A stretch of DNA of 64,000 nt, taken from Entomortierella parvispora E1425. Taxonomy: Eukaryota; Fungi; Mortierellomycota. The position numbers and the translations under genes were made by a program. Shown one piece after another: positions 11,111-21,586 of this stretch (positions are counted from its first letter, which is position 1; every line of letters starts with the position of its first letter). Below the pieces are notes generated by a model. The model was not told where the DNA came from and did not search any database. It saw only the letters and a program-made list of their open reading frames with translations. The stretch is from the NCBI GenBank assembly GCA_020891255.1, contig BQFW01000006.1, forward strand, positions 186,001-250,000, read 5' to 3'.

Positions 11111-12366
11111 GAGTCTGTTAATGTCCTTTGGAGAAAGGAGCATTCCTCGGTGGAATCAAGCGAAGAATCCCATCCCGATGATTCTGATCGGAATCAAGAA
11201 CGCTCGAACGATGCAGAGGATAGTGATAATGGTCCTTCAGACTCCTCAGCACCGCAGGCAAGCGTCAATGGGTCACCTACAACAGAGGATAGAGATAATG
11301 GTCCTCCAGACTCTACAGCACCCCCAAAGGCAAGCGAGGGTCGACATTTGATAGGGATTAGTGAAGTTGATGGCCTTGATCTACCAGAGTCGGATAAAGA
11401 ACTACCACGAGTTGACAGCGACGGAAGCGAGCCACAGAGTATGTCCCGTTATGGAAATATCAACGACAGGATAAAAAAGGAGGATGATGACTGGAGGGAC
11501 CAATACTGGGACAATGGCTCCCCCGATTCCGCCGATTCCCCTTGCGACATTAGCAGGAATCAAAGGCCTGGAGATGGCCATGGACGACCAGCCGGTAATG
11601 TAGATGATCATAGGAGGAACCAGCGCTCTAAGGACAGCCCTCGTATGGATCCACAAGGCCAATTGCAACCCAGCCACGGCCGACACCATACAAAGAGCCC
11701 AAGCGGGAGCAGGAGCAGCGGCTACAGCAGTAGGGAACAACGCCGTCGGAACCATTGCCATAAAAGGAGCCAAAGCAAGAGCAGCGACTACAGCAGTAGG
11801 GACCTACGCCATGGAGGCCGTCGTTATAGAAGGAGCAGAAGCAGGAGCAGAAGCAGCGACTACAGCAGTAGGAACCTGCACCGTGGAGGCCGTCGCTATA
11901 AAAGGAGCCGAAGCAGGAGCCGAAGCAGCGACTACAGCAGTAGGAGCGAACGCCGTGGGAGTCGTCGCCTCAAGAGGAGCACTCATAATAGGAACAGCCA
12001 AAGAAGCGACAGCTGTAGGGATCGACTGCTTAGGAGCCGACGCCGTAGGACCCGCCGGAATGGGAAGAGTCGAAACAGTGACTGCAGTAATAATTACAGC
12101 AGCGATTACAGCAGCAATTATAGCAGCGAATATAGCAATATGGACCGACAGCGCCGAAACCGATGTCATAACATTCAGCACCACAAGAACCAGCGTCACA
12201 TAAACCAACGCAGCCGGGACCGACATCATGGCTATAAACGAAGTTGGAGTCAAGAGCGTAGCTTCCCAGGCCATGTGGAGCAGCACCATTGGGATCGAGG
12301 CATCAGCAACGAAGCCAGAAATATGGGCAAACCCGACTTACCGGACGGAGACGAGCGTGATGATAG
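11111..12366 (+). CDS. Acidic then Arg/Ser-rich low-complexity exon, probably the N-terminal part of the Mutator polyprotein
   Basis: Acceptor ttttctttag at 11110 and an open frame of over 400 codons with (SSDYSSR...GGRRY.RSRSRSR)n repeats. It runs into the FAR1 frame via a one-base frameshift near 12365. Confidence 0.55.
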
Positions 12367-15311
12367 GGACATGTGGTCCCTGAGGTCGGCTCTATATTCC
12401 AAAGTCTGGATGAAGGAAGGTCACTGATCAAGTCATGGGCGGCCAAGGTCGGGTTTAAAGTCAGGAGCCGTGATTCAACTCTCTTGGGGCCTCACCAGTC
12501 AGGTATGAGTTTGCTCTCGTCATTCCTGTATTGTTTATTGGATTTTTGCTAATTTGTGTACGTTGTTGCTCGGGACATGTATAGTAAAGTTGGTCTGTTC
12601 TCTACAGGGCAACCATACTTCGCAAAAGGTCGATGATATAACGAAGCACCACAAGAAGCCGCTCTCGAAACGCTGCGACTGCCCTTTCTTCATTAACATG
12701 ACCAGCCCTCGCAAGATCTCTCCAAAGTGGCATATCACGAAGTTGCATGCAGAGCACAACGGGCATGAAATGAATCTTGATCTTGCACTATACGTGGAAC
12801 TTACTCCACCAATGCCTGCCGTTATTCAACGGTGTGCAACACTGGCTCACAGCATCAGGAAGACAATGGAGGATCTGGCTTACGACTTTCCCAACTGTAA
12901 TTTCAGCAAAACCGAGGTTCAGAGCCGACACAAAGCCTTTAGAAAAAAATCTGTACCTGCAAAAATATCTCAAAGTACCCAACTAGTCACCTTGTTGAAC
13001 CAGAAGTCTCTGTCGCTTGATACATTCGAGGGTTGGTACTACCAGACGAAATATGATTCCAAAGACCATCTACTCAACCTCATCTGGATGAGTCCTGATC
13101 AGAGGGAACTTTATCGACGCTATGGCGATGTGGTGGTAAACGACACGACATGCCAGACGAAACAGGCTGGGGATGAAATCGAATTGCTCTGTGGTTATCG
13201 ACTCCATGTTCAAGACTCGTCTGGTCGCTTGTGCATTAACCCGCCAAGAACTGGTAGTCGATTATCTTTGGATCTTGACCAATTTAAGATTGGGTAGTGG
13301 GGGCCATGTACCGAAGGTTATCATGGTGGACGAGGATCCTTCTATGGACGTCGCGTGTCCCGAGGCTTTCAAGCAAACTCATGTCGTGAACTGCGTCTGG
13401 CGCATTAACAAGAACATCTCCACTCGTTTGAGACGCCCCTTGGGTGATGAGCGATTCAAGATATTCATGCAGTTCTTCAGCGATGCGCGAGAGGCTCTTA
13501 CCCCATGCGCATTTGAAGTCATATGGGCTCAGTTGACGGCTCATTGTGATGATCCGGCAGCGCAAGGGATTGGAACGCAGGAGAAGGTTCGCAAGTACGT
13601 TGCGAGACTCTATGCGCGACGATGTCATTGAGCAGGGCCATGGGTTCTAGCATCCTTTACAGCAGGCATGAGGTCGACACAGCGAGTGGAGATGACACAC
13701 AACCTCATCAAGATGATGAATGTGAATAGCAATACTTCACTTGTCGACCTCTTTTCCGCAATCAGCACGAAAATACGAAATGAGATGTTTAGCTTGAAGA
13801 CTTCGGCCAGGGATCTGCCGGAAATACCACATTCCATGTCTATAAAGTTGTTTGGCTCTGCTCTCCGGGTGAACCGACAATTCCTCGACAAATTTGCCCA
13901 AAATCAGATGAAGCTCGAAGTGGATTTTTCTTTTGGGCATCGTCATGTCCCTGTTGACATTGCTGATGTCATGAACAAACGCGGCGACGTCAATGCCGGG
14001 CCGGTAAGTACCATCATGAGAAGAGCCTTCTGCGTTTTAAGAGTCAAACTAATCGTATTTACTCATCCTCTGAAATACGCCGTAGGCAAGAGTGACACGG
14101 GACGCTGCTCGGCTGGATTCTGTGTTCGCTTTAGTATCGAATATACAAGTGGACGTGGTAGATTCTGTCTTCAAAGTTTGGGACACGTCAACGGACGGAT
14201 ATTATTCTGAGTACGTTGTCCTATTTCTCGACAGCTCGTACTTTTGCACATGCGCTATGTTACAAAACAAAGGAATAGTTTGTCGCCACTTCTTTTGGAT
14301 GATGCAAGAGGACCATCGATTCATGTACCACATTCGGTTTATCCTTAGACGATGGTTCCAGGAAGAAATGCAGCAGGGCGCTATCACTGACGACAAGATC
14401 AAAGGACTCCCTTTTATCACAGCGGGCACCTACCGAGACCTTCCATCAGAAGAGAATCGCACAGCCGTAGGAAAGGATCGTTCATCCAATGGAATGTATC
14501 GTTCAGTCATTGGAACGAATCGTCCAGCCATTGGAAAGGATCGTCCGGCTAATGGAAAGGATCGTCCAGCCATTGGAAAGGATCGTCCAGCCACTGGAAA
14601 GGATCGTCCAGCCACTGGAAAGGATCGTAGCCAGTGGAGAGGACCGCCCAGCCAGCGGAGAGGACCGCCTAGCCAGCGGAAAGGATCAGCTCACTGACGG
14701 TTACATGAGCACCTCCCAAAAATTCTTTCCCCCGCAACCAGTATATCCACCCAGGACAGAAGGAGAAGTTTGGAAAGAAGCGCTTTAGCACAGTCATGGC
14801 GATGTCCAAGCAAGTCGCCGAGGGCTTGAAATATGTGCCAGATGAGGAGTATCAAGGCATGCTGGGAATAGTGGGCATGGTTAAGCAATTGGCGAACAGC
14901 TTGTCGCAAGGAACGATGGGTTTCACTTTGGAAGATATGACTGCAACCCGCGATCATCTACAGAAACTTCACGACGGGCCAAACAATGTCACTAATGGGG
15001 ATGAGGGCAGAGATATCGACATCGATGAAATCCATGCAATCTCGGATATATTCAATGGCATCCCTCCTTCAAACATTAGCGACGGCGAGATACCAAAAGC
15101 GATAGGCCGACCAAAGTTCACTCGACTCAAAGCGTCGTATGAGTCCAAACGCAGTCGACCAAAAGAACAAGCGACATCATCAACAGAGCAACCAAAGAGG
15201 CGGGCCAAGGGCACAGAGCAACCAAAACGGCTAGCCAAGGGTACAGAGCCAAGGCCACCGACAGCTGCACCCGCTCTTGTCAGTAAATGGAGTCGGCGCC
15301 CAATCCACTAA
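12367..15311 (+). mobile_element. Mutator (MULE) transposase pseudogene: FAR1 domain, MULE DDE domain, SWIM zinc finger, C-terminal tail
   Basis: PEVGSIFQSLDEGRSLIKSWAAKVGFKVR; intron 12503-12584; C..CPF..W.ITKLHAEHNGH; DTTCQT/(N)RLGM...VID..FKTRLVACAL..E...VDED...CVW(R)INKN; FTAGMRSTQRVE; YFCTC...GIVCRH. Lesions: frameshift near 13160, TGA at 13629-13631 in place of Trp, frameshifts near 14630 and 14770. Confidence 0.9.
14465..14690 (+). repeat. 21-bp tandem repeat (GKDRPA(T/I/N) heptapeptide, about 10 units) in the transposase C-terminal region
   Basis: ggaaaggatcgtccagcca(t/c)t repeated. One unit is 2 nt short and shifts the frame. Confidence 0.9.
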
Positions 15312-15874: not shown

Positions 15875-16582
15875 CTTTAATCCGATCTGATTCGACTTTA
15901 ACAGAGGTCGTCATCCGCAAAAAAACCTCGTCGTCCTCATTACCATCCTCGACACCCAAGGCATCTGCATCTGCATCTGCATCTGCTAGAGCCCCCTTTG
16001 TATGGTACCGGTTTCATTTTATTCTAGATTTTTTTTGCTTGCGAGCCGATCTACAGCTCGTCCTTGGTATGCTTGGGAGTATCGCGTTGCTGCTCCTTCT
16101 TCTCCTCCTTCTGCTCCTGCTCCTTCTCCTCCACGGGCTCCTTCTCAACAGGGGCCTCCTCCTCAGGGGCAGCCTCCTCAGGGGCCGACTCGGACGAGGG
16201 CTCGGATTCACCCTCAGCCTTCTTCTCGGTCTGCTCAGGCTTCTCTGTCGAGTTGTTCTCCTTCTCCTTCTTGGTCACCTTGGGCTTCTTCTTGCTCATC
16301 AAGCGGTGCATTTCCCGCTCAACAGGGTTGCCGCGCAACTGGATCTCGCGTGCCGTCACAACGCCATCCTGCCAGAGAGCAAGCTTCTCCTGAGCAGCCT
16401 CCTTCTCCTTCATCCAGGCCAATACATCGTCGCAGGCATCAAACAACTTTTGAACATCGGCGGGCTCGTGGAAGGCTCCCTCGCCAGGCAAGAGGTGCTC
16501 GCCGACAGTATGGGCCCTGGTCACGGAGGAGCGGTGAGTCTCAAAGGCCTTGGGACTCGAGATACGCTTGGTAACACGGACA
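15875..16582 (-). pseudogene. Duplicated 3' end (about 178 codons, KDEL stop and 3' flank) of the LHS1/Grp170 gene
   Basis: Direct repeat of 21417-22117. The frame is open to ...PKHTKDEL* but has no ATG, signal peptide or ATPase domain. Confidence 0.9.
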
Positions 16583-16869
16583 GCCACGCTTGATGAACGT
16601 TGTTGAGAAGGAAATATGAGAATATGAGGTGTGTAGAGAGGGAAAAGTCAAAAGAAACATCGCCAAGATGAAGAAGAGAAGGAAATAGATGCGCTGATGA
16701 TGGAACATGAGAGTTGATTAGTCTGACAGTACAATAGAGGGAAGAGTACTGCACGATGTGAAGGAGGAGAAGGCTCCATCAGAAAGAGAAACATTCACTC
16801 CCCCCCCCCCAATGACAAGCTGCAACTGGATACATTTATTGGCCGATCAACACCATTGACGTCAATATT

Positions 16870-17334
16870 TTAGGCTTCCTTGGGGTACAATTCTTGTAAG
16901 GTCGCCTGAAGATGTTCATTAAACTTGGATCCACTTCCAGCAAACCTGACTTCACCATCGACCACCAACACAATACAGGGAAGAGCGACGTACTCGGTCT
17001 TACGGAAGACCTCTAGAGTATAAGAGAAAGGGCAATGGAATGCTCATCAGTTGTAGAAATGAAAATCGCGGAACGAGAGTTCAAAAAGAAGTCAAGATGA
17101 TAAACTTACCGTCTCTAATGTACTCGTCAACATTGTCGACATAAAGTGAATAACGAAAGTTTTCCTTTTTTGTATTGATGAACTCCTTCACGCCCTTCAA
17201 GCCCATCATTAGAGGATGGCGACCAAGCATCCCTTCATTGTTGATACCAATGATTGCTACCTGCCCCGTGAGTTTCTCTGAAAGATCCGAAAGCTCTAGA
17301 CCAAGGCTGATGCATGGCCCGCACCTACGATGAC

Positions 17335-17378
<44 letters not shown>

Positions 17379-17863
17379 ACGAGGGGAGGGGAAAGGAGGG
17401 CAGGGAGTTAGTGTTCCGATGTTTCCTCCTCTCAGAAAAAAAAGCAAAAAAGAAGTAGAGGGTCTCCTTACCAGGAAGCCCAGAAGTCAAGGAGAACAAT
17501 ACGCTCTTTGCCCTCGTACTTTGGTCCTCCAACATGATGGATGGCCCCAAGAACAGAAACCACATCAATCCTTGCCCCGGTATAGGGACTCACCCAACCC
17601 GGTCGTAAACAGGCTGGAGGACCGGCCTTGAGAGAGTCCCGGATTTTTTCAAATGTCTCTCTGTGTTGGTAAGACTTTAAACGTTCTAATGGGTCGTCAT
17701 ATCCAATTTCCTTGACCTGGGCCTTGAATACCTCGACGGCAGCCCAGAACGGTTCCTCTTGCCATTTATCGTCGTACTGGTCTTTAAAAGGGCGGTGGAG
17801 GGTCTCTAGATAGAAGTTGTTGAACTGCTCTTCTTTGGTGAGGGGGGTGTCCTGGGTGGTCAT
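16870..17863 (-). CDS. TlpA/redoxin-family thioredoxin-like protein with a WCGPC active site and an N-terminal extension of about 120 aa (249 aa, no signal peptide seen)
   Basis: Exons 17863-17472, 17324-17110, 17012-16870 splice in phase to give IVLLDFWASW|CGPCISLG...VAIIGINNE...LPCIVLVVDGEVRFAG. Confidence 0.88.
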
Positions 17864-20009
17864 GGTGTTGGGTTGTTTGGAATCAAAGTGGGGGACGGTG
17901 GGAGATTTTTATCACAAAAAATAAGAGAGATATTGAGTTTGGTTCGAGGTGCCCGGGTCAGGTCAGCGATCGACTTGGAAGAGAATGCCTGTTTCTGCAA
18001 CTTTTGTCCAGCAGGTGAATCATCTATATTGAGAAGTGGAGCAGTATTTTTTTGTGTTCATTATCGCTGTGTTACACCCGCCAGAGGAAAACACGGACGG
18101 ATAAACAGACAACATTCTGCGCCATACATGTACATGCACATGTACTTTCCAAAAGACACAGGAAATGGCAATGGCAAGCGCCATTGAACCAATTGCAATG
18201 CGTGTTTCCAACGATCTTTTCCATACCTTACATTCGATATCTCAAAAAATGTAGAGGCGTGTGGACAAAAGCATAGCTCTTGTGTTCAGGGTCGCGGCTC
18301 GGAATCAGATGCCGAAAGGATAAGTGCTCTCTATCAATTGCTCAACCCAGCAGAGCAACAGAGGGATGACAAGCACCACTAAACTGACCGCGTTTACGTT
18401 GATCTCTTCCCATCGTTTGCGGAGGCATGTGGATCGTCCAAGCAACGAGGCATTTTATTTTGTGTCCATTGATGCTGTGTGGCACCTGGGAAATGGGTCG
18501 AACCCACTTTCAAAGGATAAAGTTGGGACCAACATCAGGGCAAAGAGCAAAATGCAGACGCGACTATTCGTGTCATCTGCCTGCTCCTGCTATGAACAGA
18601 TTGAACTGAAGGAACTGTCCGTTAAGAGACACGCCCAATGCTCAACCGAAAGGGCGTTTTTTTTTGTTTGGATGGACGGTTGAACTGTAATTGCAAAGCT
18701 GTGCGACCTTGGCATCGCGAGTCCTGTTCCTTGGATCAAATCCATTGTCACGTACCGCGCCCAATCATGGTCTTGCCTGGTCCTCTGCTCACAACTCACA
18801 CAAATCACAATGGACTCTCTACAGTACCGTTCTGCTGGACAGCCGAAAAGACCACTGTGCTACGCGACATTGGCGGCCGACCAAAAATCAAATGAGAATC
18901 AGACGGCAAATAAGAGAGCGTCGGGCGACAAAGAAGAGAATCGAACAGCAAGCAAGGGGCTGTTAGAGTGGACGACAAGTAGACACCTACGCGTCTGGTG
19001 GAATCATTCGGGTGCCCGTTGTCCATTGTAAACCGAAGAGTCTTCTTTTCGTCATCCGGACCGATCCTGCTTGCCTATCGTCCAGTGCTCTTGTTTGTCG
19101 TCCGATGTTCTCCTATCCGGCTTCCCCTTTCTATTGGCGCTTCTGTACATGCGCATGTACTTTCTTGCCAAAGAACTTAAATTCGTGGAAAAGGCACGAT
19201 CAAAAGGATGGGTGAGGGTGAGCACAATGCCGCTGGAATTTTTTTGCCATTTTGATCTCAAAAACACAACATGCACGCAACAAGGAGAGCAACACAGCAC
19301 AATTGCCTGCAAATGTTCCCCATGGCGTGATGATTAAGGTTCTACCAGTGGTGGGGGCGGTCCTCAAGCATGAACGCGTCTATTGTTAACGTCGCCTCAC
19401 TGGTCCCACACGCGTTCTGACCCCTGTGTCTTGTCAAGTGCTCTTATTTGTTATCTCTTTGTGTCCAATGGTCTTTGCTTCCCATTCAAACGAAACACAA
19501 CGCCTCGCTGTTTGACTACTGTAGGGTGTCCATTGCAAACTCTGATCCCAATTTGTGCTCATTCCTGTCCAACAGCCTGGCCCTCGGTTTGACCTGATCA
19601 GTTCCCGAGAAAAACAGGTTTACCAATAGGCTGTTCTCGGTGCTGACTTTACCCCAGAGATTTGCCCCAAGGCATCAACAAACACGCGCTGTCGGGCAGG
19701 ACGACAAGCAGACATTGTCCTCCCGTTGGCTGAATGTTTTTGTTTGTTATTTGTGCTGTGGTTTATGTATAGATACTGTATACTGTCCAGCAGTGCTCTG
19801 TGTACCTGTTATGTCTTCTGGTCGCCTGTGCATTGTACATGTAGGCTGTGTCTTGTGTTTCGCGTTATTTTGTATTGTATCTTTGCGCCTTTGTTTCGAT
19901 TTCGTTTTTTTTTTTTTTTTTTTTTTTGGGCGCCATTTCATCCAAGGCCTACGCTCATGCAAAACTTCTATGGAACGTCAGCATGGGTGTTGGCGACTTA
20001 CTCGTCAAG

Positions 20010-20236
20010 TATAAAAGCCTGGCCCGCTCCTCTCCAATTTTTGATTCCTCAGTAACACAACTCCCCCCTTCCCCAATACACCAAGAATCCCCACCAAGAT
20101 CACTCCATCTTGAATACCTAAGTCTTGTAAGTCTATATGCAGTATTGAGGATCGCTTTCACTCAATGGATCAGACTATTATACGACCAACAACTAACTAA
20201 AGTCCAACATGCTCCTATCATCGCATTCATTTTTAG
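20010..20236 (+). promoter_or_regulatory. TATA box (20010-20017) and 5'-UTR intron (20127-20236) of the repeat-peptide precursor gene
   Basis: TATAAAAG; GTAAGT donor, ACTAAC branch point, and tttttAG acceptor 5 nt before the ATG at 20242. Confidence 0.6.
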
Positions 20237-20241
20237 AGAAG

Positions 20242-21030
20242 ATGAAATTTTTATCGATTACCGGCGCCGTCGCGATTGCCTATCTTGCCGTGGCTTTTGC
20301 GCGACCTTCCTTTGAAGGAAAGCCTCTTTCCAAGAGAGGGTTCAGGTGCAATGATCCTCCAGAGTGCACAAGCTTTACCCATTACCCGGATGGCACTGTG
20401 CATGAAGGCGAGCTCTCCAAGAGAGGATTCAGATGCGATAACCCCCCAGAGTGCACCAGTTTCTCTCATTACCCCGACGAGGCTGTCCACGAGGGTGAGC
20501 TCTCCAAGAGAGGGTTCAGATGCGATAATCCCCCAGAGTGCACAAGCTTTACCCATTACCCGGATGGCACTGTGCATGAAGGCGAGCTCTCCAAGAGAGG
20601 GTACAGATGCGAGGATCCCCCAGCGTGCAACAGCTTCTCTCATTACCCCGACGCGGCTGTCCACGAGGGTGAGCTCTCCAAGAGAGGGTTCAGATGCGAT
20701 AATCCCCCAGAGTGCACAAGCTTTACCCATTACCCGGATGGCACTGTGCATGAAGGCGAGCTCTCCAAGAGAGGATACAGATGCGAGGATCCCCCAGCAT
20801 GCAACAGCTTCTCTCATTACCCCGACGCGGCTGTCCACGAGGGTGAGCTCTCCAAGAGAGGGTTCAGATGCGATAATCCCCCAGAGTGCACAAGCTTTAC
20901 CCATTACCCGGATGGCACTGTGCATGAAGGCGAGCTCTCCAAGAGAGGATACAGATGCGAGGATCCCCCAGCATGCAACAGCTTCTCTCATTACCCAGAT
21001 CCAACCTCTCACACAGATGGTTCTCTTTAG
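20242..21030 (+). CDS. Secreted Kex2-processed repeat protein (KEP): signal peptide plus 8 Cys-x5-Cys peptide repeats separated by KR (262 aa)
   Basis: MKFLSITGAVAIAYLAVAFA signal, RPSFEGKPLSKR pro-segment, then 29-aa (87-nt) units G(F/Y)RC(N/D/E)(D/N)PP(E/A)C(T/N)SF(T/S)HYPDxxVHEGELSKR; the last unit ends PTSHTDGSL*. Confidence 0.93.
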   Translation: MKFLSITGAVAIAYLAVAFARPSFEGKPLSKRGFRCNDPPECTSFTHYPDGTVHEGELSKRGFRCDNPPECTSFSHYPDEAVHEGELSKRGFRCDNPPECTSFTHYPDGTVHEGELSKRGYRCEDPPACNSFSHYPDAAVHEGELSKRGFRCDNPPECTSFTHYPDGTVHEGELSKRGYRCEDPPACNSFSHYPDAAVHEGELSKRGFRCDNPPECTSFTHYPDGTVHEGELSKRGYRCEDPPACNSFSHYPDPTSHTDGSL

Positions 21031-21586
21031 TTGGTCGAGTCATCGAACCTCACTCGTGCATATTACCTATCATATATTAGTTTAGATAGATATAAAGTGA
21101 CACCTGTTGAATTTGAACATGTTTTCCTTTTCTTGAGCTCGAGATAATGAGAGACAATGGACAGGTTCTGTGGAGAGTGCGGGAAGGTGGAAAGCCCATG
21201 TAAGACTTGAAGCAGACACAATCCATGCTTCCTTTGACCACATGTCAAACCGGGGGAAAAGATATATCGAAAGTTGTTAGTCTACCATTGACATTGACAC
21301 CTTTTGGCACCACTATTCGACATTCTACATTTGATCCAGGGTCGTTCCGACAACTTTGTCGCCCGATTCGACCAAGGATTCTTTGATTCGAATCACCGAC
21401 GGGTATTCGATCCGACCTTTGATCCGATTTGATTCGACTTTGACAGAGGTCGTCATCCGCAAAGAACCTCGTCGTCCTCGTTACGATCCTCGGCACCCAA
21501 GGCATCTGCTTCTGCATCTGCTGGAGCCCCTTTTGTATGGTACCGGTTCAATTTTATTCTAGATATTTTTTTGCTTGCGAGCCGAT

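Follow-up and report, generated by a model that had tools for sequence, protein, structure and literature searches.

A probable Kex2-processed repeat protein with two-cysteine cores in Entomortierella parvispora

The precursor gene

The window, by which we mean the whole 64,000-nucleotide stretch of the Entomortierella parvispora E1425 contig that was analysed, carries a transposon region, a thioredoxin-like gene, an ER-type Hsp70 gene, an FMN reductase gene and a citrate synthase gene and, between the second and third of these, an open reading frame that is, judging from the features set out below, a real gene for a secreted-looking protein (Table 1). Its N-terminus opens with MK and continues as an 18-residue hydrophobic stretch (GRAVY 2.1, or 1.8 for the 20 residues taken together) up to A-F-A, and on inspection it has the character of a signal peptide. 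The pro-piece, RPSFEGKPLSKR, leads into eight units of 29 residues (87 bp) that start at 20338, 20425, 20512, 20599, 20686, 20773, 20860 and 20947. LSKR precedes each unit and closes units 1 to 7; unit 8, the last of the B units, has instead a diverged tail without KR that reaches the stop codon. Tandem Repeats Finder describes the array both as a period of 87 with 7.7 copies and 78% matches and as a period of 174 with 3.8 copies and 96% matches. The longer period reflects units 3 to 8, in which two unit types alternate in three dimer copies that are 96-100% identical to one another (units 3, 5 and 7 have the same DNA sequence, and units 4 and 6 are 98% identical), while A-type and B-type units share just 77-79% of their DNA. 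A reading of this DNA made beforehand from the letters alone (the sequence-only reading) had described a signal peptide, a pro-piece and eight KR-bounded tandem units, and had seen in units 3 to 8 an A-B-A-B-A-B series left by recent expansion of a 174-bp dimer; the open reading frame is as it described, and the repeat analysis and the identities among copies agree with the expansion. Within the window tblastn finds no paralogue of the precursor. In two DNA runs of one sample, possibly the source of the window assembly, short-read contigs break inside the array, where word depth reaches about three times the flanking level; this is weak evidence in favour of three dimer copies.

Table 1. Positions in the window of the parts of the precursor gene and of the features around it.
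Feature	Position	Strand	Details
Region with FAR1 DNA-binding domain and MULE transposase	11150-15311	+	
72-bp tandem units	11699-11980		near the MULE element
FAR1/MULE transposase	12554-13631	+	Pfam
21-bp tandem units	14454-14642		near the MULE element
710-bp direct duplication, first copy	15875-16583		94.6% identity to second copy
Thioredoxin-like gene	~16900-17863	-	W-CGPC split by intron; no signal peptide
Long T-run	~19905-19927		upstream of TATA box
TATA box TATAAAAG	20010..20017	+	TATAAA at the same relative place in loci L001 and L002
Putative leader intron, 110 nt	20127..20236	+	GTAAGT donor, ACTAAC branch at 20192-20197, TAG acceptor
Precursor open reading frame	20242-21030	+	262 aa from ATG at 20242; reading of the window and list of open reading frames
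Signal-peptide-like N-terminus, 20 aa	20242..20301	+	putative cut after A-F-A; by inspection
Pro-piece, 12 aa	20302..20337	+	ends LSKR
Units 1 and 2	20338..20511	+	older, diverged copies; unit comparison
Units 3 to 8	20512..21027	+	174-bp A/B dimer, three times; Tandem Repeats Finder and unit comparison
Stop codon	21028..21030	+	TAG
710-bp direct duplication, second copy	21417-22119		
ER-type Hsp70 (Lhs1/GRP170-like)	21587-23822	-	ends KDEL; Pfam
FMN reductase	27796-28701		Pfam
Citrate synthase	31408-32709	-	Pfam

Three frames stay open through the repeat, two of them on the plus strand (+0 and +1) and the third on the minus strand (list of open reading frames), and the diverged units were therefore compared in every frame. 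Between A and B units the annotated frame gives a dN of 0.135 and a dS of 0.88, hence a dN/dS of 0.15; the two remaining open frames give 3.3 and 2.4. Likewise, units 1 and 2, which are 77% identical in DNA with 20 nucleotide differences, differ by 5 residues in the annotated frame and by 15-17 in four of the others, and by 7 in the sixth frame, itself interrupted by stop codons. Comparison of the window units with the cores of the related locus L001 gives a dN/dS of 0.09-0.32 where it can be computed, with dS near or at saturation. These estimates come from only 18-29 codons and are rough as numbers, although their direction is unambiguous. Purifying selection, as read from these substitutions, marks the annotated frame as coding, and no other.

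Upstream, the putative leader intron ends 5 nt ahead of the ATG and holds a further in-frame ATG at 20209. A GTAAG donor, a CTAA(C/T) branch and an AG acceptor align at matching places in L001 and L002, the loci of two relatives. The shared TATA and intron signals lend the gene model comparative support and would not amount to proof of expression. The TATA box and 5'-UTR intron of the sequence-only reading are thus present and conserved in two related loci, while its remark that the gene looks expressed was drawn from those signals alone.

Relatives and the conserved core

Among 5.8 billion proteins searched by word index there was one relative, P0001. phmmer, run exhaustively over 1.84 billion representatives, returned P0001, P0002 and P0005 together with unrelated repeat proteins, and P0009 and P0010 came to light with a profile search. 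The five relatives found in all hold 2, 2, 1, 1 and 1 cores. P0001, from a Logan contig (L001), has two cores and a signal peptide almost the same as that of the window protein, and P0002, from a JGI soil metagenome (L002), has two cores at a locus that looks decayed. P0005 and P0009, from Logan and JGI contigs, have a single core followed by A-L-K-R and then by an unrelated tail of about 60 residues. P0010, the only relative that carries a species name, is a hypothetical protein of Haplosporangium gracile (Mortierellaceae) in which P-K-K-R follows the single core. Every relative that can be placed belongs to the Mortierellaceae. Scanning JGI metagenome contigs with a profile of the unit recovered L002 once more and three chance matches with stop codons. 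Between the loci blastn aligns only the coding sequence and not the flanks, and no synteny is detectable in the DNA outside it.

Across these proteins the conserved module is, by alignment, a core of 18 residues, G-[FY]-R-C-x-x-P-P-x-C-x-x-F-x-H-Y-P-D, from which one unit of L002 deviates by having Arg for the first Cys. In the alignment of 12 units (A3), K-R before the core is invariant, as are the core residues G, R, P-P, the second Cys, F, H and Y; Leu at P4, the first Cys and P-D are kept in at least 90%. The sequence-only reading had also placed an invariant Ser at position 12 of the motif; its pattern holds within the window, but Ser12 varies across the relatives. Dibasic sites travel with this core. 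[LF]-[SA]-K-R stands ahead of it in all relatives, the next dibasic site follows H-Y-P-D after 2 to 9 residues in the 12 aligned units, and in the single-core relatives LKR or KKR comes within 1-2 residues of its end. Given that dibasic sites accompany the core whether it is present in one, two or eight copies, the pattern is the one expected of an excised peptide, and for a structural repeat it would be hard to explain. Two of the single-core loci (L007, 438-854, and L008, 165-569) have, after the core, more dibasic sites and a C-terminal stretch of 55-75 non-homologous residues; further, unrelated peptides may be set free from them, or their gene models may overrun.

The same evidence bears on the possibility of a secreted repeat protein that is never cut, wall-associated, adhesive or part of a matrix, in which the units are disulfide-stapled modules and KR is simply part of the repeat. 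Because a repeat takes its dibasic pairs with it when it is copied, nothing follows from how regular they are within one gene, and in the model obtained with AlphaFold2 from the single sequence without an alignment the short strand and helix elements recur from unit to unit. That model otherwise has no confident overall fold (pLDDT 56.6, pTM 0.24), and low confidence in a run without an alignment counts as weak evidence against a folded repeat protein. Further, the dibasic sites flank the core in the single-core relatives as well, copy number changes from 1 to 2 to 8 with the unit unchanged, the spacer varies in length, and the Leu found at P4 of nearly all sites fits the preference of Kex2. 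Also lacking from the precursor are N-x-S/T sequons, any Ser/Thr-rich region and a hydrophobic C-terminus of the sort that a GPI anchor requires, which makes a GPI-anchored or heavily glycosylated wall protein unlikely. We consider an uncleaved repeat protein an unlikely account of the gene.

L002 (630-1020, JGI metagenome 3300030054) looks decayed, although this could be an error of metagenome assembly. Relative to the other two loci it has a 7-nt insertion, which leaves the ATG of the signal peptide out of frame with the remainder; Arg replaces the first Cys in its first unit; and a third, degenerate unit (GYTCDGPPES...) lies frameshifted past a stop codon. This broken-looking relative, with its frameshift and its lost Cys, might suggest that the gene in the window is itself silent or decaying, a recently amplified repeat with no present function, and the position of the gene in a rearranged region, bracketed by a duplication and beside a MULE element, points the same way. 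Against this, the frame of 262 codons is intact in spite of a repeat prone to slippage, dN/dS lies well below 1 whether older units are compared with younger ones or one species with another, and the promoter and intron signals are conserved. We attach very little probability to decay.

Domain and structure searches

Searches for known domains and folds add little to the picture. RELT, PAN_4 and PAN_1 score above the Pfam cut-off for the protein as a whole (PAN_1 and PAN_4 at 33 and 28 bits), and no single stretch passes. The RELT and PAN matches cover just 9-15 profile positions, and the protein shows no domain-level match that would place it among PAN/apple domains, its match extending over 15 profile positions. 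These hits, like those to ET and others, were set aside as artefacts of summing over repeats, since in a two-unit piece they drop under the cut-off and in the relatives they do not occur. No PDB chain matches the unit profile. Structure hits from the ESM Atlas were discarded, as they belong to unrelated families with a TM by hit of at most 0.39, except for two short and unrelated entries. Finally, the run G-x-R-C...P-P-x-C...P-D resembles the loop of sunflower trypsin inhibitor and Bowman-Birk proteins; this likeness was likewise put aside, the loop here being two residues shorter and having no basic P1 inside.

Genomic neighbourhood

The neighbourhood was scanned with Pfam over open reading frames of at least 120 aa between about 11 and 32 kb, a design that short exons could escape. 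The citrate synthase matches its counterpart in Mortierella alpina at 94% identity and those in Podila species at 91-92%, other Mortierellaceae coming next, and so places the host in the Mortierellaceae (Mucoromycota). A DUF4112 fragment also lies among the neighbours. In the thioredoxin-fold gene an intron with a long T-run splits ...FWASW from CGPC, and the first exon alone has no Pfam hit. The Hsp70 gene lies directly downstream of the precursor gene and is convergent with it, an adjacency that is probably coincidental. The direct duplication of 710 bp comprises the 3' end of the Hsp70 gene, including the KDEL terminus, and sequence downstream of it; its two copies bracket about 4.8 kb with the thioredoxin-like and precursor genes, beside the MULE element, and suggest a local rearrangement or insertion.

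Over the scanned open reading frames there was no hit to DUF3328, tyrosinase, P450 or methyltransferase, and a dikaritin-type cluster thus appears not to be present at the locus, though short exons could escape the scan. The sequence-only reading had likewise seen no DUF3328 oxidase or other tailoring enzyme nearby. It had also put the gene forward as a possible RiPP family, a status to which these results lend no backing, there being no DUF3328 or tailoring gene in open reading frames of at least 120 aa within about 10 kb. A heavily modified RiPP precursor, dikaritin-like or of a new class, would need enzymes encoded elsewhere to modify the Tyr, His or Pro of the core. Its layout is that of the ustiloxin and phomopsin precursors (PMC7329392), and the core does offer an invariant F, H and Y and a Pro-Pro pair. 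What the locus offers around the gene, however, is a thioredoxin-like gene, an ER Hsp70, an FMN reductase, a citrate synthase and a MULE transposon in place of any of the four enzyme families, and most of the KEPs (Kex2-processed repeat proteins) that have been studied yield linear, minimally modified peptides (PMC9769878). Such a precursor is, in our estimate, very unlikely.

Predicted processing and products

The combined evidence favours a different account, namely that the gene probably encodes a KEP which releases anionic peptides of about 27 residues, each with a C-x5-C loop. The processed-precursor layout proposed in the sequence-only reading accordingly has support from the sequence, from selection and from the comparison of loci. 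The signal peptide would send the precursor into the ER and be cut off after Ala20. There, oxidation would join Cys4 to Cys10 in each unit by a disulfide, and the resulting ring of seven residues would enclose a Pro-Pro turn; we infer the bridge from the presence of two Cys, of which the second is invariant and the first is Arg in one L002 unit. A Golgi kexin of the Kex2 type would then cleave after every L-S-K-R and a carboxypeptidase of the Kex1 type would remove the K/R, so that eight anionic peptides in five sequence variants would be secreted. The preference of Kex2 is known, and Leu at P4 fits it. The acidic tail of each unit (..VHEGELS) would serve mostly as a spacer and as recognition context for Kex2, its Leu occupying P4. 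Since the A/B dimer was recently amplified threefold, each transcript would yield more peptide.

Cutting after KR and trimming K/R in silico gives five variants of 27 residues (once, once, three times, twice, and one terminal), the same set that the sequence-only reading had listed. Their predicted monoisotopic masses fall at about 2950-3022 Da, or 2 Da less if oxidised: 2994.26 Da for unit 1 and for units 3, 5 and 7, which are isobaric, 3022.25 Da for unit 2, 2950.23 Da for units 4 and 6 and 2952.21 Da for unit 8. The predicted net charge is -3 to -5 and the pI 4.4-4.6, a charge that is not conserved in P0001. Strongly anionic peptides of this kind would be unlike the classical cationic antimicrobial peptides. 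The antimicrobial and Cu/Zn-binding roles suggested in the sequence-only reading find no support in the analysis. The most likely role, and here we are guessing, is that of an extracellular signalling or interaction peptide rather than a membrane-lytic antimicrobial. Going beyond this, we would give only a small chance to the core being a peptide hormone of the Mortierellaceae or an inter-organism signal directed at plants, endobacteria or conspecific hyphae, or else a RiPP scaffold modified in trans; if that were so, the Mortierellomycotina would gain their first secreted peptide signal with a defined function. Fungi of the Mortierellaceae abound in soil and in association with roots. For peptidomics and bioassays the peptides are an easily synthesised target, namely five 27-mer variants and a single conserved core of 18 residues, whose predicted masses are exact.

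Comparison with known systems

Four kinds of known precursor invite comparison, the first being the KEPs themselves, as Le Marquer et al. 2019 (PMC6339444) and Umemura 2020 (PMC7329392) define them. Experiments in other fungi have shown that KEX2 and KEX1 process KEPs (PMC9769878). In Agaricomycetes, peptidomics and heterologous expression of KEPs, those of Coprinopsis among them, yielded linear, minimally modified products, and knock-outs were without an axenic phenotype (PMC9769878). The class is well represented in the Mucoromycota, with 357 KEPs in 38 of 39 strains and a mean of 9.15 per strain (PMC7329392); 8 have been counted in Mortierella verticillata (PMC7329392) and 11-12 in Mortierella elongata AG-77 (PMC6339444). 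The supplementary text of the two catalogues (PMC6339444, PMC7329392), as far as it was available, does not contain the core motif, and a literature search on Mortierella with Kex2 or RiPP returned nothing specific. The cutting layout is therefore well known in fungi, the Mucoromycota and Mortierella included, and the core family appears undescribed in the parts of the catalogues that could be searched. Since KEPs have already been counted in the phylum and the genus, the gene opens no new category. Of the earlier suggestion that this is a new peptide family outside Dikarya, the taxonomy of the host, indicated by the citrate synthase, stands and the core family looks new, but the class to which it belongs had already been recorded in the Mucoromycota (PMC7329392, PMC6339444).

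Precursors of the alpha-factor type (MFalpha1 of S. cerevisiae, and those of Sordariomycetes with W-C-x6-C-W) resemble the window gene in their prepro layout and KR-delimited tandem cores, and some Sordariomycete pheromone cores hold two Cys (PMC6339444). A mating pheromone precursor analogous to those of Ascomycota would accordingly share the architecture found here, and the nearest feature clusters in the ESM Atlas are Pheromone 1, MF_alpha and apidaecin, all multi-peptide precursors, at scores of at most 0.82 that provide a lead only; scores below 0.9 are often attained by shuffled sequences. There is, however, no Pfam match to MF_alpha at E up to 1; no STE13 spacer (X-A/X-P) follows KR, where G-F or G-Y is found instead; the peptides are acidic and of 18-27 residues as opposed to 9-13; the cores are C-x5-C rather than C-x6-C; and the phylum is a different one. 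For Mucoromycotina the pheromones reported are apocarotenoids (PMC6339444). A pheromone precursor is thus most improbable.

Similarly, the dikaritin precursors of ustiloxin and phomopsin, UstA and PhomA, combine a signal peptide with KR-separated, repeated short cores. They differ from the present gene in that no DUF3328 (UstYa) gene was found near it among open reading frames of at least 120 aa at about 11-32 kb, in that the core here is much longer than the four residues of Y-x-I-G, and in that a disulfide would be expected in place of an ether bridge. The apidaecin precursors of insects are also polyproteins of many near-identical, Pro-containing peptides with basic release sites, yet apidaecin is of animal origin, cationic, free of Cys and antibacterial, and the likeness is one of architecture only.

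With the KEPs the gene shares the three sequence features of the class (PMC6339444). The window protein has a signal-peptide-like N-terminus, nearly the same in P0001; eight 29-residue units where at least three near-identical repeats define the class; dibasic sites between the repeats (KR, RR or KK in the class), LSKR here and [LF]-[SA]-K-R in the relatives; no enzyme domain; and a lineage-restricted family of variable copy number. The single-core relatives would fail the rule of three repeats. The gene belongs to a new, narrowly distributed family within the known KEP kind, and with a dimer present three times and almost undiverged, next to relatives with one or two cores, it offers the sight of a KEP array in the midst of its expansion.
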